NCBI RefSeq assembly: GCF_000142905.1
Contig: NW_013657679.1
Location: 312,657 to 376,656 of the forward strand
Direction: 5' to 3'
Origin: Thecamonas trahens ATCC 50062
Lineage: Eukaryota > Protista > Apusomonadida
DNA length: 64,000 nt
Shown piece after piece: positions 12,549-40,202 of this stretch. Under the pieces are notes generated by a model. It searched no databases. It was not told where the DNA came from and saw nothing but the letters and a program-made list of their open reading frames with translations. Made by a program: the position numbers and the translations under genes. How positions within the stretch are numbered: the first letter of the stretch is position 1; each line of letters starts with the position of its first letter.

Positions 12549-12723
12549 GGCTGCTTGGCAAGTCGTGTGCTCGTGAGTTGGCGACTCCGCCTCCACAACG
12601 TGGGATCCGCTGTGCCGACGACGGCCGCAGGCCACGGCGGCGACAAGGCTTTCCATCCCTACATTTGAATCTCTACGTGTCACTTGACTTCATTTAGGGC
12701 TCTATCATCTCATTCGAACCCGA

Positions 12724-15700
12724 TCAAGCTTGTCGGATGGTGTCAAGCCGCTGCAGCGCTCGCTGGACTCGGACGTCAGCCTCGGCCTTGACCTCGTCGA
12801 TCTCGGTGGTGAGTGCGGCCGACTTGGCTTTTGCATCGTCGAGGGCCCTCAAGAGGCGGGTGATCTGCCGAGCCTGCGAGGCAGAAACAACCTTGACCAT
12901 CTCATGTGTGTGCCGCTCGAGCACCAGCTCCATTCGGCTCTCGACGTACATCCGCATGTAACGGATAATCTCCTCTTCAGACGACTCGCCATCGTCACTT
13001 GAGTCGCCGGCAAACGGATCCGAGACGGTGACAAGGCCTTGCAGCTTGTCAATGCCGCGGCGAATGCTCTTCAGAGCGGCATCACGCTCCGAAGCCAGCT
13101 TGATTAGCTTCTCGTTGGCCTCGCGGGCACGGGCATGCGCCGCCGCCACCTTGTCGCGCGAGATGTTGCCCGAGAGAACCGAGGCGTTTGCCAACCGCCG
13201 CTCCTCCAGCAGCTGCGCCTCCTTGGCAGCAATGCTCCCCGGCAGTACGTCTTCGATGATCTCAAACGCACTATCGATGCGCTCCATGTACCGTTCCGCC
13301 CGCGAAAGTACCGTCTCGTCCATCATGCTCTGCGTCGCGGTCGCGTTGAGGTGCGACTGAGAGAACGACGCCTGCAGCAGAATGTGCGAGGTGTGCGCTC
13401 GGTCAACAGCCTCATCGAGCGTCGACCGCACACCCACCAACGCAGTCTCCAGCTCCGACCGAGACGCCTCGGCAGCATCCGCTTCAGCGCGGACCTGCAC
13501 AAGCTCGGCCTCAAGATCAGCATACTGTTCGTCCGCCCGGACAATCGAGCCTTCCAGCTCGCGCAACGCGGCGCGCATGGCCACAACCTCTGGTCCGAGC
13601 TCGGCGTCGGCGTCGGCGTCAAGCGCAGTGAGGGCCTCGATGTCACGCTTCAAAACGTTCAGGTGCGCCACATTTGCCTCGCGCCCGGCCGCAAGCGACG
13701 CTTGGTCAGTGGCAATTGCTGACACCCGCGAGCTGTGCACACGGAGCACTCCGTTGAGGTGCTCGGCAATGAGGCGCACCGTCCGTGTGGTCGCCGTTGA
13801 CGCTTCAGACGCATCGTCCGACATCGCTGCAGACGCCGCAGCCGCCGCTTCTTCCGCCGCCGCCACTCGCTGGTCGGCAAGTGCCGCCGCTGCCTTGAGG
13901 TTCTCGATCAGCACCTCGGCCTCGTGCTTCTCGGCACGCAGAGCGCGCGCCGCCGATTCGCTCGCCTCCATGCGCGCGCTTGCATCTGACAACTGACTCC
14001 GCAAGTGTGCATTGTGACTCAGCAGCGTGTGCTTGAGCTCCAACAGACCATCAAGCTCGTCGCGAACACGCGCCATGTCGTCGACATACGACGAGACGCG
14101 CGACGCGTAGACCGTGGACATGGACGTGGCGTCGCCGGCAGCTCTAAGGGACTCGCTCATGTCCCGCTCCTTGACCTCGGCCTCGAGCACCACAAGCTCC
14201 GAGCGCAGCACCTCTAACGCAGCTCGGAGTTCAGCCTCGCGGGCCTCAGCAACCACGTCTGCTGTGTTCTTGGCGGCAAGCTTTGACGCCAGCTGAGCGT
14301 TAGCAGCCTGAGCCTTCTCCAGCTCGGCCGCAAGTCGGATCTCATCGCGCAAAGTCTCGGCGACGGCGGAGACCAGAAGACTTGCCTCGCTCGTCGTTGA
14401 CTCTATCGCCGACGTGTCTAGCGACGACATAGCCGACGCAAACGACTCGTCGCTCGAACGCGAGACAACAACCACCGAGCCCTGAGCTTCGTGGTCACGC
14501 TCAAGCTCTAGCACACGCGCCAGCAAGCTAGCCCGCGACGCAACAAGCTCCTCAGACAGCGACTTGGCGTTTCCTACATCGTGGAGGTAGTCGGAGAGTG
14601 AGCGCAGCTGCTCGGCACGCATCGCCGCCGTCGTTTCGGAAACCGTTGCACGCTCTAGCGCGGCCGCCACTTGGCTGCTCAGAGCGTTGTTCGCGGTCTC
14701 AGCAGCATCAGCACGCTCGATTGCGCGCTCACACTCTGCCTCCAACGCTGCAATCTCGGCCCGAGCCTCTGCCAGCCGGGTTCGGAGCGTGGCGGTGGTC
14801 AAAGCGTCGTCTGACTTGACAGCCACAAGCGCCTCAGACGAGGCAAGCAACTGTTCAAGCTGGGCGCGAGCCTGGCCGTGACGGGCCTTGTACGAGGCTG
14901 CCTCGGTGTTTGCACGCTCAACCTCGGCCTCGACCTCTGCGATGCGCATGTCGGCGTCGGCCCGCTCGCGGTCCATGCGCTCAACAAGTGATGCAACCTG
15001 CTGCTTGAGTGCCTCGACGGTCACTAGGTAGTCGTGGACAGCGTCAGCGCGAGCCTGGGAGTCGGTGATGGCTGACGATGACGAAGCAGCCACAGCCGCC
15101 TGCAACTCGGCGTTCTGTCGAGTAAGAGCATCAATTGACGCGGTCAGGGCTGCAAGCTCGACAGGCGACTCGGCTTCCTCGCCCTCCTGAATCCGCGTGA
15201 TGGCGGCGTCAAGAACCTCCGAGAGCTCCGTGGCATGCCGCTCGGCCTCGGCAATAATCGACTCACCGGTAGTCCCGTCGGAAATTGTCGATACGTTGTG
15301 TGACGACGCACCGCTCACGTCCAGCGGTGGCGTACCCGCCTCGGGCTGCGACATGATCTCCATGGCCTCGATTTCAACTGCAACACGGCCCAACTCTGCC
15401 TGGGCTCTGTTCTCAGCAAGCACTGCTGCTAACTCGACCCCCTTGGCATCGGCCTCAGCCCGTGCCGCTTCCAGAGCAGCGGTCTTGTCGGTGAGCTTCG
15501 CCTCCATCGCGGCCAGACGCAACTTGGCTCCGCTTATCTGAGCAGGGACATTCGCCAGCTCGGCTTCCTTAGCTTCAACCTCGGCCTGCGCCGCCTTCAG
15601 GGCAATTGCCTTGCTGGCAAGCTCCGTCTCCATCTCGGCCAGACGAACAGAAAGACTAGCGATGTCTCCATCCCTCTCCTTGCGGTGACCAGACGATACA

Positions 15701-17945
15701 AAGCTCACAAGGTCCTTGGCCGCGGCAGCCGCAATTGAAACCTGTGTCAGCCTGCAACCCAGCACCGCCACTCGGTCGCGCTTGAGAGCGCTCGCATGCG
15801 CTGCAAGTTCGGCAATTCGAGTCTCTTTCGCGACTGCCTTGCGGCGTGCAAACACCACGTCGTCGGCAAGCACGTCGGCTTGCTCGTTGAGGTCGCGGAC
15901 CTCGGCCTCGAGCTCCACAATCCGGGTCTCCATTTCCGACCGCTCCATTGACGCCAAGAGCGCATGAGTGCTGTCTTCGCTTGATGGCGATGATGGCGCT
16001 GCCGACGCAAACCGAACTTGCTTCGGAGAGCTTTGCCTGACCAACATGGCCTCAGCTGCTTCTGCTCGCTGCCGCTCGGCATCAAGCAGAGTCTGCATCT
16101 CCACCATCGCCTCGGCCTCGCTTTCGCGCACTGCTGCAAGTTCGGCCTCCAGGGTCGCCACTTGGTCTTTGGAGGCCGCAAGCTCTTCCAGCTTGACACC
16201 AGCCACATCAATCTCCGACATCAGCTGCTTGACCTGCGAAGCCAAATCGGCCTCGCGAGTGGCGTGCGCTTCGCGCGTGCCAACAAGGTCGTCAGCAAGA
16301 ACATCCGCCTGCGCGTTGACCTCTGCCACTTGCGCTTCAAGCGCAGCAGACCGCTTCCGCTCAGCATCGAGAGCAACCTGTAGAGTCGCAATACGGCTGT
16401 CGACAGAGGGTTCGTCCGGAGAAAGCTCCAGAGCTGCAGGTGCGACACGTGCAGTACCGCGCTCTTCGCGTAGCTCGCCAATTTCAACCTCCAGCTCCTC
16501 CACCTTGAGTGCCGCAGCCGCAGCCCGGTCCCGCTCGGCCTCCAGCTCCGACATAAGCTCGCTGACGTGCATATCGTTCGCCGCAGCAGCCCTTGCTCCC
16601 GCTAGCTCCGCCTTGAGCGCAGCAACCTCGGCCGACGATGCCCGCAACACGTTCTCGCGCAACTGCTGCTCGACATCATCGAATGCCGTCGTCATTTCCA
16701 GTGCCTCGCCGCGAGCCTGCACCACGCCGTCCTGTGCACGGGCCAGTGCAGCAGTCGCAGTTTCCAGCTCCGCCTCGAGCTCCACCACACGATCACCGCC
16801 ACCCTCTTCCTTGACGACATGCTCAACTTGAACTGCCACCTCCACAGCGGCAGACTTGACAACAGCCACGGCATCGCGCGCTACTGTCAACTCGTCGGCC
16901 AGGACGTCTGTCTGAGCATCGAGGCTGATGATTTCGGTCTCGAGCTCCTCGATCTTGGTGGCAGCAGCAGCATACCGCTCCCGCTCGGCCTCCAGCTTGG
17001 CCTCGGCTGCAGCTGCGAACGCTGCACGGGTCTGATGCTCACCAGCCAGTTTGGCCTTGAGCTCATCAATCTTGGCAGCCGCAGCAGCTGACCGCTCCCG
17101 CTCAGCTTCACCCGCATCTGCAGCCGCATTTGCAGCCACAGCACGCGCCTCACGCTCTTTGACTAGCTCGTCCGTGAGCAAGTCAGCCTGGGCATTCATC
17201 TCAGCCACCTCGGCCTCGAGTGCCTCGATCTTTGCTGTAGCAGCCGCAGTCCGAGCCCGTTCGGCCATCACTGCGGCCTCCAGCTCAGCCACCTGCGTGT
17301 CGCTCGCCGCGGCCGCCTTGACACTTGCCAACTCGGTCTTGAGTGCAGCGACCTCGGCGGCCGACGCACGAAGCACGTTCTCGCGCAACTGTGTCTCGAC
17401 ATCGTCAAACGCCGTCGTCATCTCCAACGCCTCACCGCGCGCCTGTGCCATGCCGTCCTGTGCGCGACCAAGTGCAGCCACAGCAGTTGCCAGCTCCGCC
17501 TCCAGTGCGATCACCCGTGCATTCTCGCCGGCACTGCTGCTCTCATCTGACGACATTGCGGCTGGCGGCGGTGGCGCCGCCTCGGCATCAACCACGACCG
17601 GCACTGCTGACGCCTCAGCTGCCTCGCGCGCCGCGACGACCTCGTCCGCGAGCGTGTCGGCTTGGGCGTTGAGCTCGGCCACCTCGCCTTCCAGCTCCTC
17701 GATCTTGGCGGTAGCGGCCGTAAGTCGCTCACGCTCAGACTTGAGCGCAGCCTCGAGCACCAGAACCGCCTCGTCCGCATGCTCACACTCGGCAGCCGCG
17801 CTGTCCTTGCCGTGCTTCTGAGCATCGACTTCGGTCTCGAGCTTGGCCACCTCGACCACGTGCGCCTCACGCTCCTGCACAAGCACCACATCAGCAACTG
17901 CCTCCTCTGCGGCTGCCCTTGCCGCTGCTAAGGCAGCCGCGTGTT
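12724..17945 (-). CDS. C-terminal segment of the giant coiled-coil gene (1721-aa ORF plus upstream in-frame extension)
   Basis: Long heptad ORF with repeated ERER..AATAKIEELE.EVAELNAQAD.LADE motif. Confidence 0.8.
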
Positions 17946-20900
17946 TCGCGCTGTAGCAGCTGCAGTCCGAGCCTGTTCGGCCATCACTGCGGCCTCCAGC
18001 TCAGCCACCTGCGTGTCGCTCGCCGCGGCCGCCTTGACACTTGCCAGCTCGGTCTTGAGTGCAGCGACCTCGGCGGCCGACGCACGAAGCACGTTCTCGC
18101 GCAACTGTGTCTCGACATCGTCAAACGCCGTCGTCATCTCCAACGCCTCACCGCGCGCCTGTGCCATGCCGTCCTGTGCGCGACCAAGTGCAGCCACAGC
18201 AGTTGCCAGCTCCGCCTCCAGTGCGATCACCCGTGCATTCTCGCCGGCACTGCTGCTCTCATCTGACAACATTGCGGCTGGCGGCGGTGGCGCCGCCTCG
18301 GCATCAACCACGACCGGCGCTGCTGACGCCTCAGCTGCCTCGCGCGCCGCCACGACCTCGTCCGCGAGCGTGTCGGCTTGGGCGTTGAGCTCGGCCACCT
18401 CGCCTTCCAGCTCCTCAATTTTGGCAGTGGCGGCTGCAAGTCGTTCACGCTCGGAGTTCAGCGCAGCCTCAAGAGCAACTACTGCCGCATCACTCCGCTT
18501 GAGTTCGTCCGCTACATCAGCAACACGCCGTCGTTCCGTGACAATCTCGTTGGCAAGGGCATCCGCTGCAGCGTTTGCCTCGGCAACATCAGCTTCCAGT
18601 GCATCGATCTGTGCCTCGGCAACAGCAACACGATCGCGCCACACACCCAGTGCATCGTCCATCTCAGTATTTGTGCCATCCATAACAGCCAGCTGTGCGT
18701 TCTCTCGCAGTTGCTGCTCCATGTCGCCAAACGCTGTCGACATCGCCAGAACCATGCCATGAGCCTCACCCACTCCACCCTTGGCCCGCAAAAGTGCTGC
18801 AGTAGCAACCGTCAGCTCAGCCTCGAGATCGACAACGCGCGTCTCAAGAGCCGCAACGTGATCACTCTCACTACTATGGTGTGCGGCATGCCCCCGTGCA
18901 GCCACAAGCTGGTCCGCAAGCGAGTCGGCCTGCGCGTTAAGCTCGGCCATCTCGGCTTCCAGCTTCTCCACCTTTTCCATCGCAGCAGCGTTTCGCTCAC
19001 GCTCGCCAGCAAGTGCAGTCTCCAGCGTAGCCACAGCAGAAACACGATGTCCACCTCTGGTAGAACGCTCCCTATCATCACCAGGCGCATCGCTCAGCTG
19101 CTGCTCCCGGTCGCCAAATGTCCTCGACATCTCAATAATCTCGGCCCGAGCCACAGCCACATCGCCATGTGCTCGCGCCAGCGCACTCTTGCTCATCTCA
19201 AGCCGGGTCTCGAGCTCCTGTACCCGCTGCGCAAGACGCGCAGCCTGATCAGCTGCGCCGGTGGCCCGCATATGCTCTGCGTCCGCCCGCGCTCGCTCAA
19301 CCTCAGCAAGCTCCTGCTCAGTCTGAAGTACTGCCTGCAGTGCGGTTTCCACCTGCCGCTCACTCTCAAGCACATCGTCAGACAGTGCCGCTGTCAGGCT
19401 AGGCACGCTGGCTTCGAGCTCTGCGCGCGACATTCGAGTCGCCACAAGCTCCTCCACAATAGCATCCATCTTGATATTCAGAGAAGCCAGCTCTGCTTCG
19501 AGTGCGTCGGCCCTCGACTCGGCAACGGCGCGCAGCTCACGCTCACGCCGCAGCGCATGGTCCTCGTCACCATTGTCCAGAACCGCCTCGAACGCGCTCA
19601 CTGTCGCTTCAGCCGCGACTTGAGCTTCACCGATGGCTCCTACGGCCTTGCGCAGACGTGCTTCTGCAATAGACGCCCGCATGCGCGCTTCGACCTCGCG
19701 CGCTTCGGAATCGAAAGCGCGCTTCTCGGCAGTAGCAAGCTTGTCACGCCCTGTAGAAACTTGAACAACCATTGCATCCAGCTCGACATTGGCCTCGTCG
19801 ATTTCGCCCTCCAGCAGCTCTATCGCCTCAAGCTTGTCTTCGTACAAAGCAAGAGTTCTGTCCAGCTGGTCGCGTGCTTGCGACAATTCTTCCTCGAGCT
19901 TCTTCACCTCCCCTGCGGCGACTCTGTCACGACCACTGCGAGCCGGTGTGGCGCACACCGTGGCAGTCATTGACTCATCCCAGAAGTCCGACGCCTCGTC
20001 TCCTATTGCCGAAGCAGCCACCCCATCGAGCTCGGCCGTGAGGTTTTCGAGCTCGGCGTGGAGAGCGTCAACCCGGGCGACCGGGTCGGGCATCGCGTCG
20101 TCGTCAGTCTCACTCGACAGAGCGCCGGTTCGGCGCCGACCCACCCCTCGACCCACAGAAGCCGACGCAAGCAGCGACTCGGCCAACTGCCGGGCTGCGC
20201 GCAACGTCAACACTCGCTCCTTAGCTACGCTCCTCTCCACAAAACAAGGGGCAAGTCCTTCATCCTGACGCGAACCAATGCTATGCTCAAGCAGTTGGGC
20301 GCGGAGTGCATCACGCTCGCTCAGTGCCGCCTCCAGCGCCGACCGCAACTCGGTCACCAGCTCCATATCCCGCTGATCTGCCTTTTGTCGGCGTTGCGAA
20401 TCCTCGTCTGAGGCATTCATCATAGCCTCGGTCGCCTCCGCCAACTCGCGCTCCAGGCGCGACACCTCAGCCTGTGCCGCCGCAAGCTGCCGTTTCATCA
20501 GCGCAATCTCCTCTTTGAGCTCGCCGTTGAGGCGGATCATCTTGCGGAGATCTCCCAGTAGCTTGAGCTGCGGGTCGTCCTCATCACCCAACCCAGAATC
20601 GGACGTCCGCTCAGCCTCTTCAAGACCGTGCACCAGCCGTGCACGCTCGGCCTCGACATCGCCGAACGCGGTTGCGAGGCGGGAGTCAAGCTCTGCCTCG
20701 CGTCGAGCAAGTGCCACCGCCAGCGCCTCCCGCGTCTCTTCAAGCTCCGCCTCCATCGCCGCAAGCTCGCGTCCGGCATCTTCCGACATGTTGAGCAGCT
20801 CGCGCGACCGCGCCTCCTCCGCCACAAGGCGCTCCTTGAGCCGAGCAACCTGTGACTTGAGCACCACCGTCGGCACCTGCTCCATCGATGCCTCCTCGTC

Positions 20901-23900
20901 AGAGACTCCGTCGTCGTCATCGTCGACGGAAACGCCCCGGGCTTGGGCAAACGCCAGCTTTTGCTCCATCGCCGCGGCAGCGACCCGCAGCTCAACATTC
21001 TCGGACGTAACCTCGTCCAGTCGCGTGCGCGCTTGAGCCAGCTCGTCGCGGGTAGCTTTCAACGTCTCGCCTAGCAACGACAAAGCCTGATCCTCAGCAG
21101 GGGCCTCTTTCTCGGCCAAACTCAGGAGCGATGCTTCAAGCTTTGCCACCCGCTTGGTCGCGCCTGCCTCACGCTGCTCAGCACGTACTGCGTTAGTCTC
21201 TGCTCCGCTCGTGCGCTCCCTCAATGCCGCCACTTCCTGTGCCAGCTCGTTGCGCTCGTGCTCAATCGCCGCCAGCCGCTCTACAGTCTCGGCGTGGCGT
21301 TCCTGCCAGGCCCGCGCCTCGGCCTTGGCCGACGCAGCTTCAACCTGAGCCAGGGATGCGCTCTCGTCGCCACCACTGCCGCTGCCAGCTGTCCGAGACG
21401 CTGCAACCTGGGCCTGCACCTGGGCTGCCATGAGTGCCTGTCGTACTTCGATCAGCTCCTCCCTCAGAGCAGACATGCCATCTGCATTCGGGCGCTGCGC
21501 CAACCGGACCTGCTCACGAGCGTGTGCGGCCTCGTTCTCGGCCACCTGCGCACGGGCCAACGCTTCTGCGGCGGCAGCCGAGCTTGCTTCGGCACGCTCG
21601 TGTGCCGCCGCCGCAAGCTCCTTGAACTCGGCGGCGCGGGTTTCGGCCAGCTCCTTCGCTGCCGCAAGCCGCGACGCCTCGATTTGTGCCGCAGCTAGCT
21701 GCTGCTGGAGTGCACGCGACCTTGCGCTGGCTTCGCGCTCCAGTTCGTGCAGCTCGTTTTCCTGGTCCGTAATGATGTTGCGCATCGAGGCGACCCAGGC
21801 CTCTATCTCGCGCTTGGACGTCGTCTCGGCGGCATGGTCGTTCATGAGTGCAGTCAGCGCCGCGCGAGCCGCCTGGAGCCCATTCTGAGTCCGTGCCACC
21901 ACGGACGAGTTCTGCGACTGCAGTGCCATCGATTGTGACATCAGCGACTCGTTTGTGTCACGAAGCGAGGTCAGCTCCGCTGATGCCACCTCCAGCTGGG
22001 CCCGCAAGCCCTGAAGCTCGACCTCGGCGCTCCGAACTCGCTCGTTGAGCTCATTCTCGCGTTCAACCAGCATCTGTGATGCCTCGTCAAGCTCAAGCTC
22101 CTTCTCCTGCACCACCTGGCTCATCGAATCCAGTTCGACCTCGAGCGACGTGACTGTTGCCACCAGCTCGGCGTTGTGGCTCCTGAGCTGTTCGCTCTCG
22201 TCAATCAGCTCCTGCATCATAGCTGCAGATGCCTGCTTGGCACGCCGGCTCTCGTCATCGAGCGTAGTGTTCGCCGCCTGGACTGCAGCCAGGCGCTCCT
22301 CAAGCTCGGAGGCCCGCAGCTGTGCCTCAACAGCAACAGCGTTATTGTCCACAGCATGGTCGCGGTTCGCAGTGCCAGTCTGTGCCAGCGCAAGCGCCTC
22401 CTCCAGAACCTCGTTCTGCGCCTCCAACTCAGACACTCGGTTTCGCAAGTAGTCCATGTCCTCTTGAAGAGTCTCGGTCATGGACATGAAGGCCTGATGA
22501 GACGACGACACGCTGCCACCATTGTCACCCAGCCTTGTCTCGCGCTCGTCGTCGACCATAACCGCCTGCATCTGCGCCTGCAGCTGCGCCACATGGTGCT
22601 GCGAAATCTCCAGCGCAGCTCGCTCAGTAGCCAACTGCTCCAGCAAGACCGCCTTGGGCGCGTTGGCGTCGGCAACCGTATCATCGCCGAACAGCGAGTC
22701 GAGGGTCGGCGCCTCAAACGAGTTCTCGGCCTCCACAAACGCCACCGTTGACCGCTCAGCCCGGATGGGTGTGAGTGTCGTGGCATACAACCCAGGCGTG
22801 CCGCCGCCGCCCACAAGCAGCAGACGTTGAAGGTCCTTGTTGCGCGCCGCGAGCTGGCCTTGTCGGCTCGTCGACTCGGAGAGCGCGGCCTGCAGGTTAG
22901 CAACCTGGCCTGCAAGGTCCGTCCGCTGGTCGCGGCTCATGTGGAGCGCAGACTCAAACTTGGACACATCGTCGTCAGCTTCATCGCCGAGAAGGTCACC
23001 ACCAAGCCGCTGATCATCGCCAAGCCTAGTCCGCAACGGCAATGCCGCCAGGCTGGCTACCTGTTCTTCCAGCGTACCCACATCCTTGCGCAGTGCCTCG
23101 GCACGAACGGTTAGTGCCTCGTTCTGCGACTGCAAAGCGGCACGATCGACGCGGGCGTCGGCGAGATCCTCCTCCGCTGCCGTCAACTCCTGTGCGGCCT
23201 GCTCACGGTATGTCACTGCTTCGCGCAAGAACGCATTTGCCAGGTCCCACGCCTCGGACAGTCTGCTGAGGTACGTCCGGAGAGTGGACGCGCTCACAGC
23301 CTTGCCCAGAGCGTCAGAAAGGCGAGCATTTGTCTCCTCGAGTGCCTGGGCGTGTTGCGTCAAATCCTCTTGCGCCCGCGCAAGCTTGGCATTCTCGACT
23401 GTAAGCGCCCTATTGTATGCAGACTCACGCATAAGGTCTGCCCGCAAATCCGAGTTGCTCTCCAGCACATGCAACACCGCCGCATCCTCTTTGGGGCCGC
23501 TGTGCTTGCGCCCACTACGCTCCGGTGCAGTATCCGCAAGCACCATCGCCGGCCGCGGTTCGAGCTCCACAGCAGAACGCTGCGCAACACTCTGAAGGTG
23601 ACCAACGAGCTCAAGCAGAGCACCATTGTCGGTCTCGGTCCGCGCCAGCACCCGCTGTAGCGCATCGATCTCCCGCACAAGGGCAGCCGCACGCTCAGTG
23701 CCGCCACTTTCGCCGTCGGACGCGGGGGCGGTAGACGACTCAACGTTCTTGTCGGTGCTGTCCAAGTAATCAGGCGTCGGCGCCACGTCCTCTCCGTCCA
23801 CAACAGACGTCGAAAGCACAGCAGTAGCGGTCTCGGACTGCGGCGCCACGTCCTCTCCGTCCAAAACAGACGTCGAAAGCACAGCAGTAGCGGTCTCGGA

Positions 23901-26900: not shown

Positions 26901-29900
26901 AACCACCTCGCCTTCCATCCGCTGCAGCACCGTCCGGAACCGCTCCACAAGGTCGGCGTCGACGCTACTACCGCCGCTGCCAAGCACAACCTCCATCGAC
27001 CGCTTGACCGCCTCGACAGACTCGACGCTGTCGTTTGCTCCAGCCGCAGGCATGCTGGCCGCAACGTACACACTCGGATCATCGCGAGGAATTGGAGTCT
27101 CGAGCGCCACGTGGGACGCCTTGAGCACCTCTTCCAGCTCCAGCTCGCCGTCCGAAGTCTCAGCGCAGCTCGACTCGAGCGGCTCGCCGCCTCTGACACC
27201 AGCACGCCGCAACTTGCGCCGCAGTGACCGGTTGACCTTCTTCAGCTCGCGAACTTTGACTCGCTCCTGTGACAGCGCCTTGGTCAGCGCTGCCAGCTCG
27301 TCTTCCATGTCGCGAATGTCCTCTTCGAGCATGTTCTTCCGCGACTGAAGATGCAGCGTCTCGGCCATGTTGCGCGGCTGTCCGGCGACATCAACCTCAA
27401 CCACCTTGGCCACCGGCGAGCCCAGCTCTTGCGCAAATTTGCGGAACGCAATCATGTCCACCATCTCCTCGTCAGACTCGGACCCGCCCTCAGCACCATA
27501 CCGGGCAAACGAGGCATCTGCCAGCGAGTACGGTGCAACCAGACCGGCACCCCTGTCGCCACGGCTCCCGCGCTCGACCTCCACCTGTGCCGCAAGCACT
27601 TGTGACTCTAGCTCGGACTCGCGCTCAATCGCGGCTCCATACTGCCGCTTGAGCATAGCATATTCGTGCCGAAGTGCATCAAGCTCATCCTGTAGCGCCA
27701 GCACTCGATCCTCTAGCCCCGGCTCGTCCGTCCGGTGCTTTCGCCGGTGGTAATGGTGCCTCTCCTTCATCCCCGTGTGCGGGTGTGCAGCACGAAGCAT
27801 TTGCTGCTCCAGCGGTGAGAGCACCACACCGGCTGCTTCTAGCTTGTCCTCCAGCCCGATTCGAACCGTCTCGAGCAAGCTGTGGGCCTCGGTCTCGGCC
27901 TTGCCGTCGACATCAGGCTCGACCGCGGACTCGCCAGTCCCGACGGCCCGACGGCTCCGACGCCGGCGATACTTGTTCCGCTCACCAGCGCCACCAGACG
28001 CCGCACTGTCCGGAACGTCTGTGCTGTCTGCGGGTCGACGCTTCCGCCGACGCCGCCGCTGCTGTCTCTGCTGTTGGGGCTCCACGCCGACCACGTCTGC
28101 GCTTCCATCGCCAACACTAGTCTCAACGCCGCCGTCATCGTGGCGTGCCCGATGCTGCCGACGCCGCCGAGGATGCTTCTGCCGTTGTGCTGGAGTCGGC
28201 GTAAGCTGTGTCCCACCGTTCTTGGCGCCTTCACGAGCGGGTGCAACGTCAAGATCGTCGTCCACTTCGTCGTCCGAGTAATACTCCGAGTAGAAATCGG
28301 AATACGGTCCACACTTGTACTCGAAACCCGGTGCGATCTCGGACTCTGCAACAGCTCGACGGGTTTTCTCCGGTGTAGGCTCGCCTACAATCGCCAGGTC
28401 GAGCGGCGCCACACTCACGCCGTTGGCCTCCAGCATGTCACGCAGCTTGCTCCACTCACGCATCAGGTGTGCCTTGGACATTGCCAACAGCGCCAGCTCG
28501 CCCTGTGCCCGCTCGTTCGCCACCTGTTCCGCAAGCACCTGCTCCTCCAGAAACTCGATCCGCGCGCCGGCCGCCACCCCGTCGAACGAGTCGTCGAGCA
28601 CAAAGTCGTACGGGGCCAGCGCAAGGTCAGTCCCGCCCAACTCGCGAACATACTCGGCGAGCTCCGCCAAGTGCCGGTCCCGCTGCCTGAGCGCCTGCTC
28701 CGCCGCGAGCAGCTGCTCTTGCAGCTTGGTCACCTCGTCCGAAGCCTCGCCCCCAGACGGCCCGTGGCCTGCGCGCAGCTCAGGCCACTCCAACTGGGCC
28801 ACAAGGTTGTCGACCGAGCTTGGCCGCGACTCGAGCACACGAACCGACCGCTCCGCCCGCTCACGCCGGAGCTTAGCAGCCACGAGCTCCCGTGGCTGGT
28901 CACCATCCTCGCTCACATTTGCCACTCCGGCATCTGTCAGGGACCGCCGCAGCTGCTGAACCTCCACCTGCAGCGCCGCAATGAGGTCATCCTTGGTCTC
29001 GCCCTCGACAAGCGCCTCCTGCAGTGCACGTGTCAGTGACTCCACTAGCTCCGCATTATCGCTTCCGTCGGCTCGCCGCTGTGCCAGCTCCTTGTCAAGA
29101 GCCGCAGCCGCGTTCATGAGCTCGATCTTGTCGCGCGCAAGCTGCACAACCTCGTCATCGCGCTCGTCAAGCTCATCAAGCGTCTTGTCAAGCGACATCT
29201 GCAGCAGCGTCTCACGTCCAGACTCGGTCCGCTTCCCGCTTCCAGGTGCCTGGTGCGCAGCACGCTCGCGCCGCGCCTCACTCCGCGCCGCCACAAGAAG
29301 CGACGCGTCGGCGCTGGGACGCCCGGCGTCTAGAAGTGCCTTGGAAAGCTCGACCTGGGTTGCAATCAACTGAGAAGCTGTCTCTTCGGCCTCGCCCGTC
29401 ACAGCCTCGAGCTCATTGCTCATCGCAGCCATGTTGGCTTCGAGTGCCTCGATCTTGGCAGCGCGCTCCTCTGCCAGCGACGTCAACTCACGGTTGAGCC
29501 CTTCCACACGCAGCTTCTCCTTGGCCATCCCGTCAAGCTCGGCCTCAAGCTCCTTAAGTGTCTCGGCCAAATCGCTCACCTGTTCCGCAAGCAGCTCGTT
29601 GCGCGCTTGCAACTCAAAGGCCTGTACCGCTGGGGATGCGCTGAGCCCATGATGACGAAGCTGTTCACCGCCATCCTCCGCGGTCGGCGCAGTCAGGTCA
29701 GCGCCACCGTGAGAGCCGAGAGACGAGCGTGCAAGTGCCACTTGTGAGCGAGCAACCTCGTTCTCGAGCTCGGCGTTCTCGCGCGCAACTTCTTCCAGCT
29801 CGCGCTGCAGCCGCTCGACTGAGCTGTGGGCCAACGCCGTCTCGTCTTGAGACTCCTCGAGCGCCGCCTCGAGCTCCATGATCCGCCGCATGTCGGTCGT

Positions 29901-32900
29901 CCGCGCTGACGTCAGCTCGCGCACCTCGCTCTGCAGGCCGGCGTAAGCCTCGTTGAGGTCATCGAGCTGCTCCGAAAGAATCGTGTTGCGCTCTTCTGTC
30001 GACACCAGCTTGGTCAGCGCCGTCGCGCCAGCCGAGTCGCGGGTGCGACTCTCGCGAACAGCAGCCACTCCGCCCAGCTCGGTAATCTGCTCCCGCAGCG
30101 CCTGGTTGTCTAGCTGCAGCTGTTCGGCCTCGACCTGATACTTGATGACCTGCGACTCGACATCGCCCTCGACATCCTGAGCCATGCCGTAGTCACGCCG
30201 CAACTCATCCACAAGCTGAACTAGTGCCTCCTTGTCTGCAAGGACAGCCTCGACATCGTCTTGAAGGCCCTCGATCTTGGCAAGCAGCGCCGCCTTTTCC
30301 GCAGCTTCTGCTGTCAACATCCGCTCGGCATCAAGCGCAGCCTGGTTTGCGCTCTCCAGCTCCGTCTCCAACACACGAATGGTCTGCTGCAGAGCCTCGA
30401 GCTCGCTCGACGCGACACTCTCTCCTGATCCACTTGGCCCGTCGTGGCTAGCCCCGGCGACAACGTTGCGCACCTCATCTGCGCTAGCAAGCAGCGAGAC
30501 CCGCTCCACTGGCCGCATCTCCCGTACAGCTGCAAGCTTGGCCACCACGGCAGCCTTGGACTCGTCGCTAAGCGTCGAGGTCGCAACCTGCATTTCGAGC
30601 TCTTGCACCTTGCTGAACAACGCGTTCTCGTCGCGAGCAAGCTCTCGCCACTCGCGGTCCATCTCGCTCAAGCGAACCTTGGTCTCGTTGAGGTCGGCGC
30701 CAAGCTGCTCCTTCGAAATGTGCAGCGTGGCATTCGCCGCTGATGCAGCCGCGAGTTCAGTCGCCAGATCTGCGTTGTCTGCTTGCGCTTCCGCCAGCTG
30801 CTCCGCCAGCGCCTGCAGCTCTGCCACGAGCGCCATTTTCTCCGGGTCAAATCCTGTCAACGAAGTCGACAGCGAGCTCGAGTCCGGCGTTCCATCCTGC
30901 TCAAGCTCGACCAGCCGACGCACTCCAACCGCTTCGCCCGCAACTTCGCGCTCGATCTTTGCCCGCTCCATCGCCACAACCTGCGGCGACGCAAAGCCAG
31001 ACAAAGAGTTCAGCTCGGCTGAATGCAGCACAAGCTCTTGAACGATGGCGTCCTGCCCCGAGACGACATCGCGCACAGCGTGGCTGGACTCGCGCGATGC
31101 AAGTGGGCCGTGTTCAGACCGCAACGCCTTGCCCACCGCAACAGGCAAGCCCACAGCAGGCGCGAGCCCAGGCGTCGTCAGCATCCGCCGCAGCGAGCTG
31201 TTTTCCGCGGCAAGTTCTTCCGCTCGCGACGTCGCCGCAAGCTCATCCTGCGCCAGCTCGCGCCAGCGGCGCCTCAACTCACCCAGCTCGCCGCGGGTCG
31301 ACTCGAGCATTGCATCGGCGGCCTGCCGCTCGGCGCGCAAGCCTTCGTGCTCCTTCACCAGCACCGCGTAGTCCCGCGCCAGCTGTGCGTTGCTCACGAC
31401 TGCATCGTCCAACTGATCGAGCACCACAGCCAGCCGGGTCTCCAACGCCTCCACAGAGACGCGCGACAAACCGCAACCTCACGGGCCTCTGACCCAGTAT
31501 CGGTCTTCGGCACATTGCCTCTGTTCTCCAAGCGGGACAAAATCAGGGCCTCACGCTGCGCCCGAGACTGTCCTAGCGCTTGGTCCACATACCGGCGCGA
31601 GGCGCTCACATCTCCATTGGGGGCGCTCGCGGCCAAATCTGTCGTGAGAAGCACCTGTTCAAGCTGCATCTCCAGCATGTCACCCCGTGTCCGCTCCTGC
31701 AGCACCAGTGCCTGTAGATGCGGCAGTTCATCGATTTCGGTCGGATCCAGCGCTTCACCACGGATTCGTCCACCCGCGACAGAGGGCACGTGGCGCTCGG
31801 TCCCAGCCGTCCGCCGGCCCTGACGCACACGTCCGTCCACCAGTGCGTTGTACTCGTTTGTCAACCGCACCAGCTCACGGGCGAGAACTCGCTTCTCCTC
31901 GTCGTCGCTACCTGAGCTCGACGAACCCGGTGAGTCCGGCGCTGCACCACCACTCCGCACCTTGCGCACCAAGTTTGCATTCTCGGCCACAGCCTGCTCC
32001 AGTGCGCTCCGCAGCTGCGAGACGGTATCCCACGCCGCAGCCTCACCGAGCGAGCCTCCACCATGACGCACAGCATCTGTCAGTGCTTCGTTCTGAACAA
32101 GTGCCTGCTGGTGAAGCTGCTCCAAACGCTGCATTCGGGCCGCCATAGCCACAACAACCGTCGGCTCCGGCTCGGCGGCTCCGCCGCTGGCATCTCCGCC
32201 GCCACTACCGCGCGAACGCGAAACGTAGTCGACTCCTCCGAGCAGCTCGACCTGCTCATCGACAAGGGCCGCGCGTGCATCCTGCCGCGACACAAGACTT
32301 GTGTCTCCCTCGTAGAGGGTACCCGGCTCATGAACCAGTCGTGCCAGCTCGGCCAGATCCACCGAGAGGGTCTCCAGCGCCGGAATGACCGACCGTGCGC
32401 GCGGATCGGCACCCGGGGGCAAACTACCTTCCAGCTGTGCGGCAGCCGCGCCAGGCACTGGCGCCACCTCGGCTAGCACCGACTGCAGCGTCGGCACTAG
32501 CGCCGCCATGCCCAGCTCGTCCCGCAGAGCGCGCACGTCGTCACGCGTCCGCCGGAGCGCAGCATGCGAGCCCAGCACCCGTGCTTTTTCGTTCTGCAAC
32601 CGTGCCTGGAAGCTCGCCAGCTCGTTGCCCATCATCGCAACAAGCACCCGGCCAATGAGCTCCAACAGCTGGCTGCCGTGCGCTGGTGACGCGACCAGAG
32701 TCGCATGCGGCTCAATGACCACCAGCAACCGCGCCAGCTGTGCCTCCACGTCATCAAGCGTCGCCAGCGAGCTACGCACCCGCTCGCTCACATTCGACAA
32801 CGACTCAACCTCGGCGCCGAGCGACTCCCGCTCCGCAGCTTCCATACCACGAACGTGCGCCTCCGACAACTGCCGCTGAACTGCAGCGAGCTGGCTCTCG

Positions 32901-35900
32901 GCCCGTTGCGCCGTCGAGGTATACGCCAGCCGAGTCGACTGAAGCCACTCTTGCACCTGCTCTGCTACCGCGAGAAGCGGCTTGCCGGCATGGAGCTCGT
33001 CGTAGAGTTCCGTCGAGACTGGCGCAACCGCATCCAGCTCGCGCATTGCGGACAGCGCCCGAATCTGCTCACCAGAAATCGCTTCCAGCTGCGCTTCCAG
33101 CTCAGCCACCGACCGTGCACCCGGCACAGCATCGCCAAGCAGCCGTGCAACCTCGGCCCGCAGCTGCTGCAGCTCCTGGCGCTCAGACTCGCCCAGGACC
33201 CGACTCACGAGCCCAGCCACAGACACAGCTCGCTCGTCGCTCATCGACAAATTCGCCGCGTGAGCATCAGCCTCCACCCGGAGCCGGTCCCGGGTCAACA
33301 TCGCATTTCGGCGAGTCATTTCCAGCAGCTGCTCTTCCACCTCGGCAAGCTCGATCTTGAGCTCATCGACCTGGGCCGCAAGATACGCGTGAGGACCGGC
33401 GCGCAACAGATCCGCATGCGCTCGCTCAAGCTCCCGCAGCTTGCGCGCCACGTCGGGTGCTTGCGCTGCCGCCGACACTGTCGGCACCTCCGACGCTGCC
33501 AGCAGCTCGGCAGCCGTGCTCGTCTTGACAGCAGCCGGACCCGTCCCACTCAACATCTCGCTGACAGCTTCGCCAGTAGTGCCGTCATGGGACTCGGGAT
33601 GCAGGACACGTGAAACAGCTGCCCGCAGTCGCGCCGCAAGCTCCTGGTTGTGCATGTCGAGCGAGTCAGCATCGGCCAGCAGAGTGTTGAGCACCCCGCG
33701 GAGCTGAGCACTCAGACGCATTTCCTCCTCAAGCGCATTGGCCAGGGCCTCGGACTGCTGGTGCGCAAGGAGCACGTCCGTCCGCAGGTGCTCCACTTCG
33801 GCCAAGAGTTCCTGAGGAATCATCGACTTGGGGTCCTTTTCTGACGTGGCCACCGAAGACGCTGTCGCCTTGCGCTCCGCCACCATCCGCGCTTTGGCCT
33901 CCCGCCGCTTCTCCACCTGAAGCCGCTGGTGCTCCTGCAACAACCGAGCACCCTCGCCGCCAAGCGACACATTCTGCTGCACCAGCGCCCTAGTCGACGC
34001 CGACAGCGCTGCCATCTCTTCGCCAGCCTCAAGAAGTGCCTTCTTCAAGCCCAGAATCTGCTCCGACGACGCCGCCGCTTCGGCATCCATCGCCTGAACA
34101 AGGCTCTGAGCCGCCTCCAAATCAGCCTCGAGAGCACCCATGGATTCAGCCATGGTCTCCTTGGCTTCACGCGCTTCCGCCGCTTCAATCTGCGCCTCAC
34201 CCAGCGCAGCCTCGGCCTCGGCAAGATCCATCTCGGCCTGAGTCAGCTGGTCCTCCAGGAACCGACGCAGCGCGTCGTCCATCGGCCCTGCTGTCTTCCG
34301 CTGGTGTTGCACCCGCTCCACGGACACGTACGTCACCGCCGCGTCCGCCGGATGCGCCACGTTCCCTACAGCCACAGCTCGACCAAACTCATCCACCATG
34401 GGCACGTTCGCCTCCGCACGCGACGCCAGCGACCGCTCGGTCACCCTGCTCGCGAGCTGCGGCTCAGGACCCGCCCTCACCCCGGCAGACTGCGCTACAG
34501 CTGGCATGCTTGCTTCACCCGACAGCGCACGATCGACCTGAACAGGAACGTTAAGTGCAGCCTCCATCTCGGCCTCCCGCGCCTGGACAGCTGTAAGCCG
34601 TGACCGGTACGAGACCAGCCGCGTCTCCAGCTCGGCGTTCTCGGCCGCAAGCAGCCGCTCACGAGCCATCACTGCCTCCAGCTCAATCTCCAGTGACGCC
34701 ACCGCGGCTGACGATGGTGCCGCAGACGTCACTGGCGCCGGCGAGCCCGGCGATCCCACCGAAAACACAGAGTGCGACCGCGAGTCGCCAGACACGTTAG
34801 AATGAGGGTCCGAAGAGAGCTCCCGCCGCGCGGGGCTGCCCGCCGTATTCACCTTGCTCTCCTCGTCAGTACTTGCCAGAGCCAGCGCAGCCTCAGCGGC
34901 TGCCAGCTGCTCCTCGAGACCGACCACCTTGAGCTTCAAGTTGGCCATCTCGGTGACTTGCGCCGTCGCTTCGTCCTTGCGCTCGGCCTCCGACGCCATA
35001 ACATCGTTAAGGACTGCAAGCAGGTGCACGTTCTCGGCTTCAAGCTCGGTAATCGCAGTCGCCATCCGCTTTGCATCCTCCGCCAGGAACTCCACCTCAG
35101 CCTTACTCTCGTTGAGCTCGGTCGAGCCGTCACGAAGCTCCGTCAGCTCGGCCTGCGCCGTGCTCAGCGCACGATTCAAGTCCAGGACCTTATCTTTGAG
35201 TACCGCAACCTCGGCAGTGGCATCCGCGCATCGCGCCCGTGCCTCGGTTGCACGCTCCTGCTCGGCAGCGAGCGCTTCGGCCATGCCAGCCAGCTCGGCT
35301 TCCAGCGTAGTGTTCGTCGCCTGCAGCGTCGCCGCCCGCGACGCAGACGCCATCAGCTGGCCCATGCCATCAAGCTGCCCGCGGAGCTCGTCAATTTCCA
35401 GTTCGAGCTCAGACTCGCGCGCGTTGGCCTCGCCGAGTGCAGCCTCCATCTTAGTAGCCTTGCGCGACAGCGCCGCCGCGTTCTCAGCCCGCGCCTTTAG
35501 CGCCGCGCGGAGCTCTGAGTTGTGCCGCCGCACCGCGTCCAGCGCAGCAGCCGCGGCCACGCGCTCCTCGCGCTCGCGGGCCGCCGCGTGCTCGTCGGCA
35601 GCACTCTCACTGGCCCGCTCCTCGCGGTGGCTCTCACCTGGCGTCCGCGACTCACGCTCCAGCGAGTCGGCCACGACCTGCAGCTGAGCACGAACCGGCG
35701 ACGACGCGTCGAGATCAGGAGACCGCAGCAAGAACTGTGTCACAGACGAAAGAATCGCTGCCCGCTCGTCAAGCGCACGCTTCTGCGCCGCCAAATCCGC
35801 GTGCCGTCCTCCCACCTGCGACGTGAGCACCACGTTGGTCTCCCGCAGCAGCGTCGACGCATGCTCCAAATCCTGCTCCGCATCCACAAGCTGCTGTTCC

Positions 35901-38900
35901 AGCAGAGCTCGCTGGCTCTCGAGGTTCGTAATTCGCGACTTCAGCTCGCGCACACCCTTCTCGTCAGATGTGCCAAACGCCGCAAGCTGCGCATGCAGCC
36001 CTTCCAGAGTCGTTGCAAACCGCGCCCGGTCTGACGAGAGCTCGGAAATGTGACGCTCGAGTGACGACTTTTCGCTCGCCAGTTGGGCCGAGCGCGCCTC
36101 AAGCGAGAGCGCATACTGCTCCACAGCCGCAAGGTGGTCCGACACCTCCTTCACAGCAGCTGCGTACTCGGGAATGAGCGAGGTTACATTCGTCGACGAG
36201 AGAATGGAGCGCGCTCGCTCGAGCGACGTGCCGCCCTCTCCGTCGCGCGCGAGTCCAACCACCCGCGCCGTCCCCGTGGGCGCTCCGCTAGCCTCGGCTG
36301 CCGCCCGCGACTGCCGGCCGTCACCACCGTCGCCGACCTGTGCCGGCGACGCCAGAGGCGGCGCAGCCACCAGCAGGTTGTACTGCGCAAAGACCTGGTC
36401 GAGCTCAGACTCGACACCACGCAACTCGCTGGCATCCTTCTGGATCGTCGACTTGAGTCGCTCCCGCTCGCGGGAAACGTCCGCGAGCTGCGCCTGCAGC
36501 AACGCCTCGTCGGCCTTGTCGGCCTCAGACACCGAGCCATTGAGCCGGTAGTGCGCCAGGCGCGCCTCCAGCTCTGCCCTGTCGGTTGAAGTAGAAACCA
36601 GTCGTGCGTTGAGATCATGCAGTCGCGAGTAAATGGCGTACTTTGGTCCTGCAGCTGCCGGATCCGCGCTTTGAGGTGCTCTGTCTCTGAGCTGCCAGTC
36701 AAGCCACTCCCGCTCGAGCTACTGCTGCCACGGTTGCGGTCACCCGGCATGGGCAGTGGCTCGCCGAGAAGGCCCAGAATAGCGTCCAGCGCAGACCGGA
36801 CCTTGCCGGTACCGCCGTCCAACCGCTGCGAGGCCTCGGCAAACGCAGCCAGAGCGGCCGACAGTGCCTGGTGATCAGCCTCGGTCTGCCGCTTGGACCG
36901 CCGCAGCTCACCGAGCCGCTCACGCACGCTGCGCAGCTGCTCGGCAGCCTGCTCACGCTCGGCAGCCAGGCTTGCGTGCTGCGCGGCGAGCGACGCCCGC
37001 TTGCGGGCCGGCGTCGACGCCTGCGGCATGAGCGCAACGTTGACCTGCGAAGTCTGCGAGGTCAACTTGTCCAGCCGCGCCGCGAGCTTGGCCTCAGACG
37101 CGGCGAGGCTCTCAAACTCGCGCGAGACCTGCGCCGTCGAGTCGGCCAGCACGTCCAGCAGGAGCAGCGACGAGTTGAGCTTTTCCTGGTGCATGTTGGC
37201 GTGTGTCGTCCCGGCCTCACTCCACCACGACCGCACCTGCAGTGGAAGGTACCCGTCGCGTGGGAGCCGTGCACGCGACGCCACCATGCTAACTAGCGGT
37301 GCCAGCAACTTGCTCGTACGCACCCGCAGTTCGGGCGCAAGGCACCCGCCAGACTCGGCCTCCAACAGGCCTGAAATCGCCTCCACAAGGCTTGCCACAG
37401 CTGCAGCATCCTCGACATCGGCCCGGAGTGCTGCCTTGTCCAGCCGCCCCAAGTCGAGCGTCAGCCCCACAGCAGCCTCCTCGGCAGAGTCGAGTGCAGC
37501 CTGGAGCTTGAATGCTGCAAGCAGCGTTGCGCCTGCGCGTGGGTCCGACGCGGGCAGCAGCGGCGACGAGCTCACCACCGACGATAGGCCGTCCAGGACC
37601 TTGATGGTCGCACCGTGCTTGGCAGCCAGGCCATTCCGAAGCGAGGTCAGCCGCGCGAGCGCCGCCAGCGTCGCCGACGATGGCTGCGCGAGTTCGCTGC
37701 TAACGAAAGCCTCAGCCTGGTCCAGAACCTGGCTCAGTGCCTTTGTGTTGTCACGTCGCGACCGCAGCGTCGCAACATCTTCGTTCTCGCTGGACGCTCC
37801 CAGCGAAACAGCCTCGGCCACCAGTCCATGCATGCCGCGGAGGTAGTCGGCAAGCGTTTGGTGCTGCGAGCCAAGCTCCATAAAGTGCGGATGCCGCGCC
37901 CGCGCATGCTCAGCCGCGGACTCGTTGAGCTCGGCAAGCCGCTCTTGAAGCTTGACAATGCAGGCGTAGACAACGCCGTCGTCAACCGCGTCAATCGGCG
38001 GCAGCGGCTGCGACTTTTCGATGGCCGAGAGGAGGAGTCGCGGCTCCCACGCACGGGCAATGTTCTCACCGGGCCGTCCGCCGAGCGGCGTCGCACCGAG
38101 CATGGAAACTCGTGACGCCCGTGCCTCCAGCTTGGAGATCGGCGTCGCAGGCACAGGCCCACTGCCTTCGCTGCTCGACGCCGCAGGCGAACGAGCCGCG
38201 CGGTGCGAGCTGTCCAGCAGCTGAGTTTCCAGCTGGGCCTCGCGCGCGCGCGACGCCGCAAGCTGCGCCGCCAGCGCTTGAACACGCTCTTCAAGCGCCG
38301 CCATCCGGTTGCGGGACGCGGCCAGCCGCGCGGCATCACGAGTGTTGGACTCGCCGCCTACGCTCGGGCTGGCTGGCGCGGCAGCCTCCTGCCGAGCCGC
38401 CGCATACTTGCTCCGCAGCTCGTTGTGCTGGCTCTTCAGTCGGATGAGGTCCGACCGGAGCCGCTCGACTTCCTCACTCGAGCTGGCAGCAGAGGCTGAC
38501 TGCGCCCGCACCGCTGACACTGCAGCCTTTTCGGTCGCAACCTCGCGCTCCAGCTCGGCAATGCGAGACTGCAACGCTGAGTTGGTCTCCTGCAGCGCCG
38601 AGAGCACCGCCTCGACTTCGGCAAGCGGCGTGTGCTCCGTGACTCGGAACTCGGCCAGCCGCGCGAGGTGCGACGCATTGAGCAGCTTGCGGTTGAGAGC
38701 TTGGATCTCGGCCCCCGATGCGCTCCGCGCTGACCGCAGCGCCCGGACTCGGGCCCGCTCCTCTGCCAGAGCGTCACGAAGAGCTGCAACCTCATCGGTG
38801 AGCTTGGCACGCGCCTCGCGATGCGCTTCGAGCTTGGCCACCAGCGTTTCGCGGCCCGACTCGGCAAGGTGTGACTCGAGATGAGCCCGCGCCTCGTCGC

Positions 38901-39975
38901 GCTGCTGCTGAGCAGTCACCAACTGGGCAGTCACGTCATCGAGATACGCCTGATACCGCTTGGCGTCGCGCTTGGCCGCCCGTGCAAGCTTGGCATTCTC
39001 TTTGGCCAGCTCGTCGCGCTCCTTCGACAGCTTGCGCAGCAGCGCGTTGAGGCGCTCGCTCTCCGACGAGCTCGACTGGTCACGTCCGCGGCCACGCCCG
39101 CGCCCGCGCCCCCGACCCGAGCCGGTGCGCGGCTTACCGCGCCCAAGCACGGCTTCGTCGCGTTCTTTGCGTGCGCTGGCAAGCTGCGCTTGCAGCAGCG
39201 CGACCTGGTCTTTGAGCTCGTTCGATTCGGTGTGAACCGTGAGAATGTGCTCGTGCGAAGCCTCCTTCTCCTCCAGCTTTTGCTTCAGCAGCTCGATCGA
39301 TGCATATAACGTCCGCTCCTTCCGTTGGTGCTTGCGAATGACAGCCGCGTCGTCGGCGTGGCGGCCCTCGGCCTCACGCAGTCGCTGTATCCGCTCGCGG
39401 AGCCGGCCGACCGTCAACTGGCTCTCCTCGAGTCTCCCAGCAAACTCGGCGCGGGCTGCGTCCTTGGCAGCGGCCATGGTTTCGCTTACCTCGCGGAGAA
39501 CGAGCGCCGCAAGTGCGTCGAGGTCCCTGGCACCGCTTGCACGTGCCGCCTGCGTAGCTGCCGCCGCGCTCGCCGACGCTGCCGCCACTTTTTCACGCGC
39601 CGCCGTCACCGCTGCCCGAGCCCGGGCATTCTCAGCCTTGAGCCGCTCCATAGCGGCGTTGGCAGAGTCCTCCTCCTGTCTCAACTGCGTATGGTTCGCC
39701 CGGAGCTCAGCCTGCGCCTGCGCCAGCGCATGCTCCAGACGCTCCACCTCGTTCCCGCGCACGCCTTCGCCGGACTCATCCTGGACCGTTCCAAGCTCCG
39801 ACGCGAGGGCCCGCTCAAAGTCGTCATGCTGAATCTTGCGCTCCAGCCCAGTATAGATGGGCGACCTTGCCGGCCGCTTGCTACTCACCCTTCTACCTGT
39901 CGGTGTTCTCTGTACCGCCCTGTCTCGTGACTTTGTCCCTGTCGGTCGACGTGTCCGCGACGGCGTCCCGGACAT
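12724..39975 (-). CDS. Giant (~9,080 aa) coiled-coil protein of unknown family, interrupted by three -1 frameshifts (about 36643, 31469, 17945)
   Basis: Four abutting or overlapping same-strand ORFs share the same Ala/Glu/Leu heptad composition. Adding one base at each junction gives continuous text (QDQKYAIYSRLHDL, EVAVLSRVSVEALE, ATARKHAAALAAAR). The span is 27,252 nt, +3 = 9,085 codons. The same repeat block occurs on both sides of the 17945 junction. Start MSGTPSRT at 39975. Confidence 0.72.
17235..18470 (-). repeat. Near-identical ~500-bp coding duplication, period 716 bp (717 if one base is restored)
   Basis: About 17235-17750 matches about 17951-18466; the paired shadow ORFs at 17343 and 18059 are almost identical. 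Confidence 0.9.
17945..31469 (-). CDS. Central segment of the giant coiled-coil gene (4513-aa ORF)
   Basis: Uninterrupted 13.5-kb ORF, coiled-coil composition, 21-aa tandem repeats, basic clusters. Confidence 0.85.
23779..24342 (-). repeat. 63-bp coding tandem repeat x9 (ETATAVLSTSV(L/V)DGEDVAPQS)
   Basis: Nine near-identical 21-aa units in the 4513-aa ORF. Confidence 0.95.
31469..36643 (-). CDS. Second segment of the giant coiled-coil gene (1712-aa ORF plus in-frame extension)
   Basis: Long heptad ORF; the frame stays open and protein-like upstream of the GTG at 36532, to about 36643. Confidence 0.8.
36643..39975 (-). CDS. N-terminal segment of the giant coiled-coil gene
   Basis: Basic S/T/R/P head, GRGRGRGR patch and coiled coils. 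Its own frame degrades into non-protein-like text after QLQDQ. Confidence 0.8.
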
Positions 39976-40202
39976 GGTCAAGCGCGAGAAAGAGAGCGAT
40001 GGTCCCAGTTTTGGCGGCAACGGCCGCGCCAAAAACACGACTGCCCTCCCCTCCCCCCCCCCCCCCGCCCCTCTTGAACTCAAAGCCAAACGAGGTTTGG
40101 ACGTGACTCGCCCCCGCCAGTCGCCGTACAACAGCCACCACACTTCACACAAGCTCTCCACAAAAGCTACCCTCACCTACCCGCGCCCGACTCGAACCGA
40201 CG

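Follow-up and report, generated by a model that had tools for sequence, protein, structure and literature searches.

A probable single gene for a giant orphan coiled-coil protein, split across four reading frames in the genome assembly of Thecamonas trahens

The closest described systems are the NUP-1 and FAZ proteins of trypanosomes, which are very long, mainly helical, heptad-periodic and non-enzymatic, contain near-identical internal tandem repeats and are restricted to their lineage. A predicted protein with the same set of features was found in a 64,000-nucleotide (nt) stretch of the genome of the apusomonad flagellate Thecamonas trahens ATCC 50062 (NCBI RefSeq assembly GCF_000142905.1, contig NW_013657679.1, positions 312,657 to 376,656 of the forward strand; this whole stretch is hereafter the window, and coordinates are counted from its first base). 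The giant gene that encodes this protein lies on the minus strand, from an ATG at 39975 to a TGA stop at 12726-12724. As assembled, it spans 27,252 nt (12724..39975), or 27,255 nt (9,084 codons and the stop) with three missing bases allowed for; the trypanosome NUP-1 and FAZ proteins are two to three times shorter than the resulting product of about 9,084 residues. The coding sequence is distributed among four open frames, and we consider it very probable that these represent a single, intron-less gene for an orphan coiled-coil protein, split by single-base deficits in the assembly.

A stop-to-stop scan of the minus strand delineates frame A (40176 to 36187, 1330 codons, with the first ATG at 39975), frame B (36718 to 31397, 1774 codons), frame C (31478 to 17931, 4516 codons) and frame D (18000 to 12727, 1758 codons, with the stop at 12726-12724). 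The DNA has a guanine-plus-cytosine (GC) content of 64%, for which about one stop per 38 codons is expected at random; all four frames are far above this spacing and thus represent real coding sequence rather than chance openings. Consecutive frames overlap, by 531 nt (A/B), 81 nt (B/C) and 69 nt (C/D), and the frame index falls by one at every step from A through D, a constant drop which indicates that one base is missing at each step. The periodicity of GC content over codon positions is unbroken from 12.7 to 39.9 kb, with phase switches only at about 18000, 31500 and 36650, so that there is no non-coding spacer between the four frames. No stops are present within the 27 kb except those produced by the three shifts. 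If the frames belonged to separate genes, the first methionines of B, C and D would lie, respectively, 424, 57 and 149 codons inside coding-like sequence.

Each junction is marked by a run of three identical bases; within a few codons of it, the old frame ceases to give sensible text and the new frame begins to do so. Junction 1 is an AAA run (36642..36644, minus strand), where one more A links frame A to frame B and the sequence reads ...IRQLQDQ-KYAIYSRLHDL.... At junction 2, a TTT run (31468..31470, minus strand), one more T links B to C and gives ...SEAREVAV-LSRVSVEALETRL..., and at junction 3, again an AAA run (17944..17946, minus strand), an added A links C to D and gives ...RTAAATAR-KHAAALAAAR.... 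The old frame remains open for 152, 24 and 5 codons past junctions 1, 2 and 3, respectively. The B/C overlap is so short that there is no space for an intron at junction 2. Past junction 3, the new-frame text aligns loosely with a paralogous module (K..AL.A..A), so the one-base repair stays the simplest reading there as well. Trimmed at the junctions, the pieces A to D comprise 1110, 1724, 4506 and 1739 residues, that is, 9,079 in total, which, with about five junction residues, yields 9,084. An earlier note on this DNA had described four same-strand open reading frames (ORFs) that abut without intergenic space, joined by one added base each into a product of this same length. The overlaps between the frames, the constant -1 shift and the match of the coordinates (36643, 31469 and 17945) all bear this out, and the junction peptides listed in that note (YAIYSR, EVAVLSR and HAAALAAAR) are reproduced by one extra base per run. 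No second allele or haplotig with the extra base was detected in the assembly, where each junction region is single-copy, and environmental DNA spanning junctions 1 and 2, with either three or four bases in the run, yielded no match.

Dynein heavy chain genes provided a control for the source of the breaks. In the assembly (28.7 Mb in 131 contigs), 14 such genes, with loci on contigs 6, 14, 16, 17, 35, 42, 57 and 68, were located by their C-terminal domain in a family search; 4 of them are intact in single frames (4552-4714 codons) and 10 are interrupted. Translated alignment of the broken genes to the four intact paralogues revealed about 16 frame breaks in about 193 kb, with one to three breaks per broken gene (0.083 per kb, or about one per 12 kb). 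Fourteen breaks could be resolved, and every one of them has the direction seen in the giant gene (two-sided p ~1e-4). The gaps in the protein alignments at the breaks amount to 0-2 residues (as in 11778->11784 on contig 14 and 14228->14234 on contig 68), which leaves no space for introns there. Where locatable, the break sites are usually short homopolymers: in one case, a change of TTT to TTTT restores the conserved ...EDVFRQVRKGNK..., and in another, TTTT to TTTTT restores ...ADFLVPNADPK.... One dynein break lacks any run of at least three bases. A fourth break of the same kind in the window interrupts a WD40-repeat gene on the minus strand, at a CCC run near 62490; the frames of this gene (63999->62236 and 62617->59456) overlap at 62236-62617, and one more C gives the continuous ...LLADPFPKVVTKAVIVVRF.... 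At the dynein rate, 2.26 breaks are predicted in 27.25 kb and 3 are observed in the giant gene (P(>=3) = 0.39); the fit indicates that the split reflects the assembly as a whole rather than this particular gene. Deficits of this kind, uniformly of one base and at homopolymers, are what consensus errors classically leave behind. Because the dynein breaks are uniform, one base short and mostly located at short homopolymers, there is hardly any doubt in our view that the breaks in the giant gene are sequencing or assembly undercalls, the same one-base deficits that are seen across the assembly.

Together, the four pieces amount to about 970 kDa, with an isoelectric point (pI) of 4.8. The composition is dominated by alanine (18.5%), glutamate (11.8%), leucine (11.6%) and arginine (8.4%), which jointly account for 50% of the residues, and tryptophan and cysteine are almost absent. 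All four pieces show a 3.5-residue hydrophobic period (power 0.54-0.67 vs 0.16-0.19 +/- 0.03-0.04 in shuffles), along with its 7/3 harmonic, a combination typical of coiled coils. By this heptad period, the predicted product falls into the structural class, as distinct from a homology family, of coiled-coil rod proteins. Piece A (36646..39975; this and the following features are on the minus strand) begins with a basic head rich in Ser, Thr, Pro and Arg (the first 60 residues, pI 11.7, with Ser/Thr-Pro sites), which is followed by coiled-coil segments and a less charged helical stretch at residues ~620-1000. Piece B (31472..36643) is mainly heptad-periodic. Piece C (17948..31466) consists of coiled coils broken up by linkers. 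C residues ~1040-1250 (27717..28349) form an acidic tract rich in Tyr and, after it, four patches rich in Arg, a Gly/Asp-rich linker is located at C residues ~2100-2200, and a Ser/Thr-rich, acidic tandem repeat of 21 residues (63 nt) is present in 8.9 copies with 97% matches (23778..24340). The C-terminal modular repeat array (16309..19010) encompasses five or six modules with a recurring ERER..AA..KIEELE.E motif, from C residue ~4140 to D residue ~590. Inside this older, diverged array, two segments of 527 nt (17234-17760 vs 17950-18476) are 98-100% identical at an offset of 716 nt (717 - 1), which suggests recent gene conversion. Piece D (12727..17943) carries the rest of the array and then unique coiled coil up to a hydrophilic C-terminus (...RLDTIRQA) that has no transmembrane tail.

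Several points weigh against a single, assembly-split gene for a coiled-coil scaffold. The missing bases at the junctions are inferred and not directly observed, and runs of three bases are short for classic homopolymer errors. A crude test with 28-residue heptad windows takes in only 35% of the residues (vs 5-20% in shuffles), and all functional statements are based on composition and analogy. The AAA run of junction 1 directly adjoins GTACGC, a match to the local splice-donor consensus. Junction 3 lies only 4 nt outside the edge of the near-identical 527-nt internal duplicate, where the chance of a random break that near one of the four duplicate edges is about 0.3%; this position hints at a real or repeat-induced indel, and both a consensus or polishing artefact at the repeat edge and a real indel where a conversion tract ends are possible explanations. 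Real indels can indeed arise at the edges of such recent duplicates or conversion tracts, and the frames are broken in the sole sequence at hand, as they would be if the three deficits were real mutations, in a very young pseudogene or a gene with a truncated N-terminal product of about 1,260 residues, for example, after loss of the structure in culture. However, breaks in the same direction affect 10 of the 14 conserved dynein heavy chain genes as well as the WD40 gene, and so many young pseudogenes at once, including most axonemal dyneins, would be implausible in a flagellate; furthermore, the 27 kb are devoid of stops beyond those made by the three shifts, and we regard real mutations as a very unlikely cause of the split. 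Even more improbable is a correct sequence that is decoded by genome-wide recoding, through +1 ribosomal frameshifting or transcriptional slippage at short homopolymers. Recoding would account for the uniform direction and context of the breaks (the 14 resolved dynein breaks and all four in the window are one base short, mostly at runs of 3-4 nt), but uniform one-base homopolymer deficits are classically a mark of consensus errors, neither a stop codon nor a common heptamer or shared slippery motif is present at the shift sites, and one of the dynein breaks is not associated with a run of three or more bases. A programmed +1 site of the Euplotes type, in which a slippery codon is followed by a stop, was not found at junctions 1 and 2, where the old frame runs on well past the shift (152 and 24 codons). 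Finally, a mechanical listing of ORFs yields four, as would be the case for separate neighbouring genes encoding similar coiled-coil proteins, but the frames overlap instead of being spaced apart, the starts of B and D have no nearby ATG, coding periodicity and repeat modules cross the junctions uninterrupted, and the dynein genes are split in the same way, so that the chance of four distinct genes appears close to negligible.

Junction 1 can also be read as an intron, which fits a single gene equally. The candidate, GTACGC...CAG, is 68 nt long (36574..36641, minus strand), and its removal would give ...LQDQK-LEARLAHY... and a protein 23 residues shorter. GTACGY occurs only eight times in the giant gene, such that the chance of one at a break is about 1-4%, and the GC content at the third positions of the 23 enclosed codons, 52%, is within the lowest 6% of piece B windows. 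Nevertheless, we judge this intron unlikely. In frame B, the 23 codons have a codon-usage log-likelihood of +3.3, which corresponds to the 14th percentile of in-frame values (mean 8.2, standard deviation 4.4); among open random sequences of equal composition, only 0.4% score as high. The candidate contains neither the ACTCAC branch motif nor a pyrimidine-rich body, and splicing would have to pass over a CAG 5 nt upstream and use the second AG, whereas the clear dynein intron that was examined uses the first YAG, 7 nt after ACTCAC. An intron accounts for none of the 16 dynein breaks. The giant gene is continuous whether junction 1 is a missing base or an intron. The dynein intron used for comparison, a clean 5' intron at bases 2097-2192 (plus strand) of the joined pair L024+L025, combines a GTACGT donor and a body rich in C and T with the ACTCAC branch motif and the first TAG 7 nt later.

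The sequence libraries searched for relatives of the giant protein exclude this genome's own records and those of any genome very near to it. No Pfam family scored above the cut-off in any of the four pieces, and at E<=1 the non-coil stretches (A 600-1010 and D 1380-1739) produced only low-complexity or coiled-coil noise. Among the rootletin and centrosomal families of Pfam, all matches were below the gathering score (Sas-6_C_CC, 20 bits against a cut-off of 27; CENP-F_leu_zip, 18 bits against 34.5). The Filament family (PF00038) gave no match at E<=0.01 in any piece, and no CH domains, spectrin repeats, KASH or GAR end were identified by Pfam. Searches against the sequences of solved structures likewise returned low-complexity or coiled-coil noise and no relative. 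An exhaustive HMMER search with B 1-1200 against 1.84 billion representatives produced a single match (E=7.6e-4), to an animal protein with Ig, coiled-coil and SPRY regions, which we take to be a chance similarity and not homology. Word searches with A, C and D 900-1739, which span proteins of 0.55-1.75 times the query length and thus, with piece C, put relatives longer than 7,903 residues out of range, detected no homologue. A look-alike search with the tail of D retrieved nothing beyond unnamed clusters at chance level, an exact look-up of the neighbouring 724-residue protein gave no match, the assembly showed no paralogue or second copy of the giant gene, and a search of the literature on giant coiled coils and assembly errors in Thecamonas yielded nothing relevant. 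Within the limits of these searches, the predicted protein is an orphan. The remaining claims of the earlier note fared unevenly against these data. It had pointed to the 21-residue repeat and the C-terminal modular repeats, both of which are real, and to the dominance of coiled coil with no recognisable globular domain, which agrees with the heptad period and the lack of Pfam domains. Its analogies with NUP-1, FAZ and rootletin, in contrast, come down to resemblance, and no family signature of any of these was found.

The predicted protein is a segmented rod, in which dozens of heptad-periodic helical segments are set apart by Pro/Gly/Ser linkers; judging from composition and by analogy, it would most likely form parallel coiled-coil dimers or bundles with many hinges, of up to about 1 um in length. 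At full extension, 9,084 residues would measure up to about 1.3 um, which is considerable in proportion to such a cell. Acidic partners, such as tubulin tails, nucleic acid or membranes, would most likely be bound through the basic head and the Arg-rich patches; for the latter, a role as nuclear localisation signals is just as conceivable. We favour, with moderate confidence, a role as a cytoskeletal scaffold or long-range tether; a nucleoskeletal role seems rather unlikely, and a role as an endomembrane tether more unlikely still. More specifically, and only tentatively, the protein might be an orphan 1-MDa building block of a molecularly undescribed cytoskeletal structure, such as the dorsal pellicle, the proboscis sleeve or a flagellar root fibre, in which it would set micrometre-scale spacing by its own length.

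The genes of this genome are located on mixed strands, tightly packed and mostly intron-less, and include a eukaryotic RRP6 gene besides the 14 dynein heavy chains. These features are in keeping with a small flagellate related to opisthokonts, and the alternation of genes between strands speaks against a kinetoplastid origin. The stop of the giant gene is only about 40 nt upstream of the next same-strand open frame, which encodes a class II prolyl-type transfer RNA (tRNA) synthetase (12683-12726). No tRNA genes and no Rfam families were detected in the window. Opposite the giant gene, there are long open frames on the plus strand, of up to 548 codons (18327-19970, 27843-29036 and others); these are shadow frames of the kind expected from GC-rich Ala, Glu and Leu codons and are no sign of genes. 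Outside the giant gene, runs of 10-21 C or G occur at 2353, 4664, 40053, 46587, 47945, 48250, 51491, 53835, 57859 and 58004, several of them at gaps between ORFs, for example, the C14 at 40053-40066 in the space that separates the giant gene from its divergent neighbour.

Because coding sequence in this assembly lacks a single base about once per 12 kb, its annotation fragments long genes, and most genes that exceed 10 kb come out split. The numbers of genes, orphans and pseudogenes called for Thecamonas trahens therefore need correcting. The repaired product ranks with the largest coiled-coil proteins predicted for any unicellular eukaryote. Apusomonads are a lineage close to animals and fungi, and the giant protein is a candidate component of those of their cell structures for which electron microscopy is the only source of knowledge. 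The near-identical 21-residue repeat is a ready epitope for localisation.

In spite of the overall likeness to the NUP-1 and FAZ proteins, the giant protein has no detectable sequence homology to them, either in the HMMER search with B 1-1200 or in the word searches with A, C and D. Rootletin and C-Nap1 are similarly long coiled-coil rods in flagellated cells, and Thecamonas, with its 14 dynein heavy chain genes, is such a cell, so that the giant protein might plausibly, like these, form fibres attached to basal bodies; it differs from them in that its matches to coiled-coil Pfam families are at chance level. With lamins and other intermediate filament proteins, it shares a basic, Ser/Thr-Pro-rich head ahead of a heptad rod, as well as Arg-rich patches that resemble nuclear localisation signals, but it has no Filament match, lamin tail domain or CaaX end, and its rod exceeds theirs about 25-fold in length. 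Golgins such as giantin, spectraplakins and nesprins are also giant rod-shaped tethers, from which the protein described here is set apart by the lack of a C-terminal membrane anchor, GRIP and CH domains, and spectrin repeats. The giant protein of Thecamonas is an orphan addition to the known class of giant coiled-coil scaffolds.

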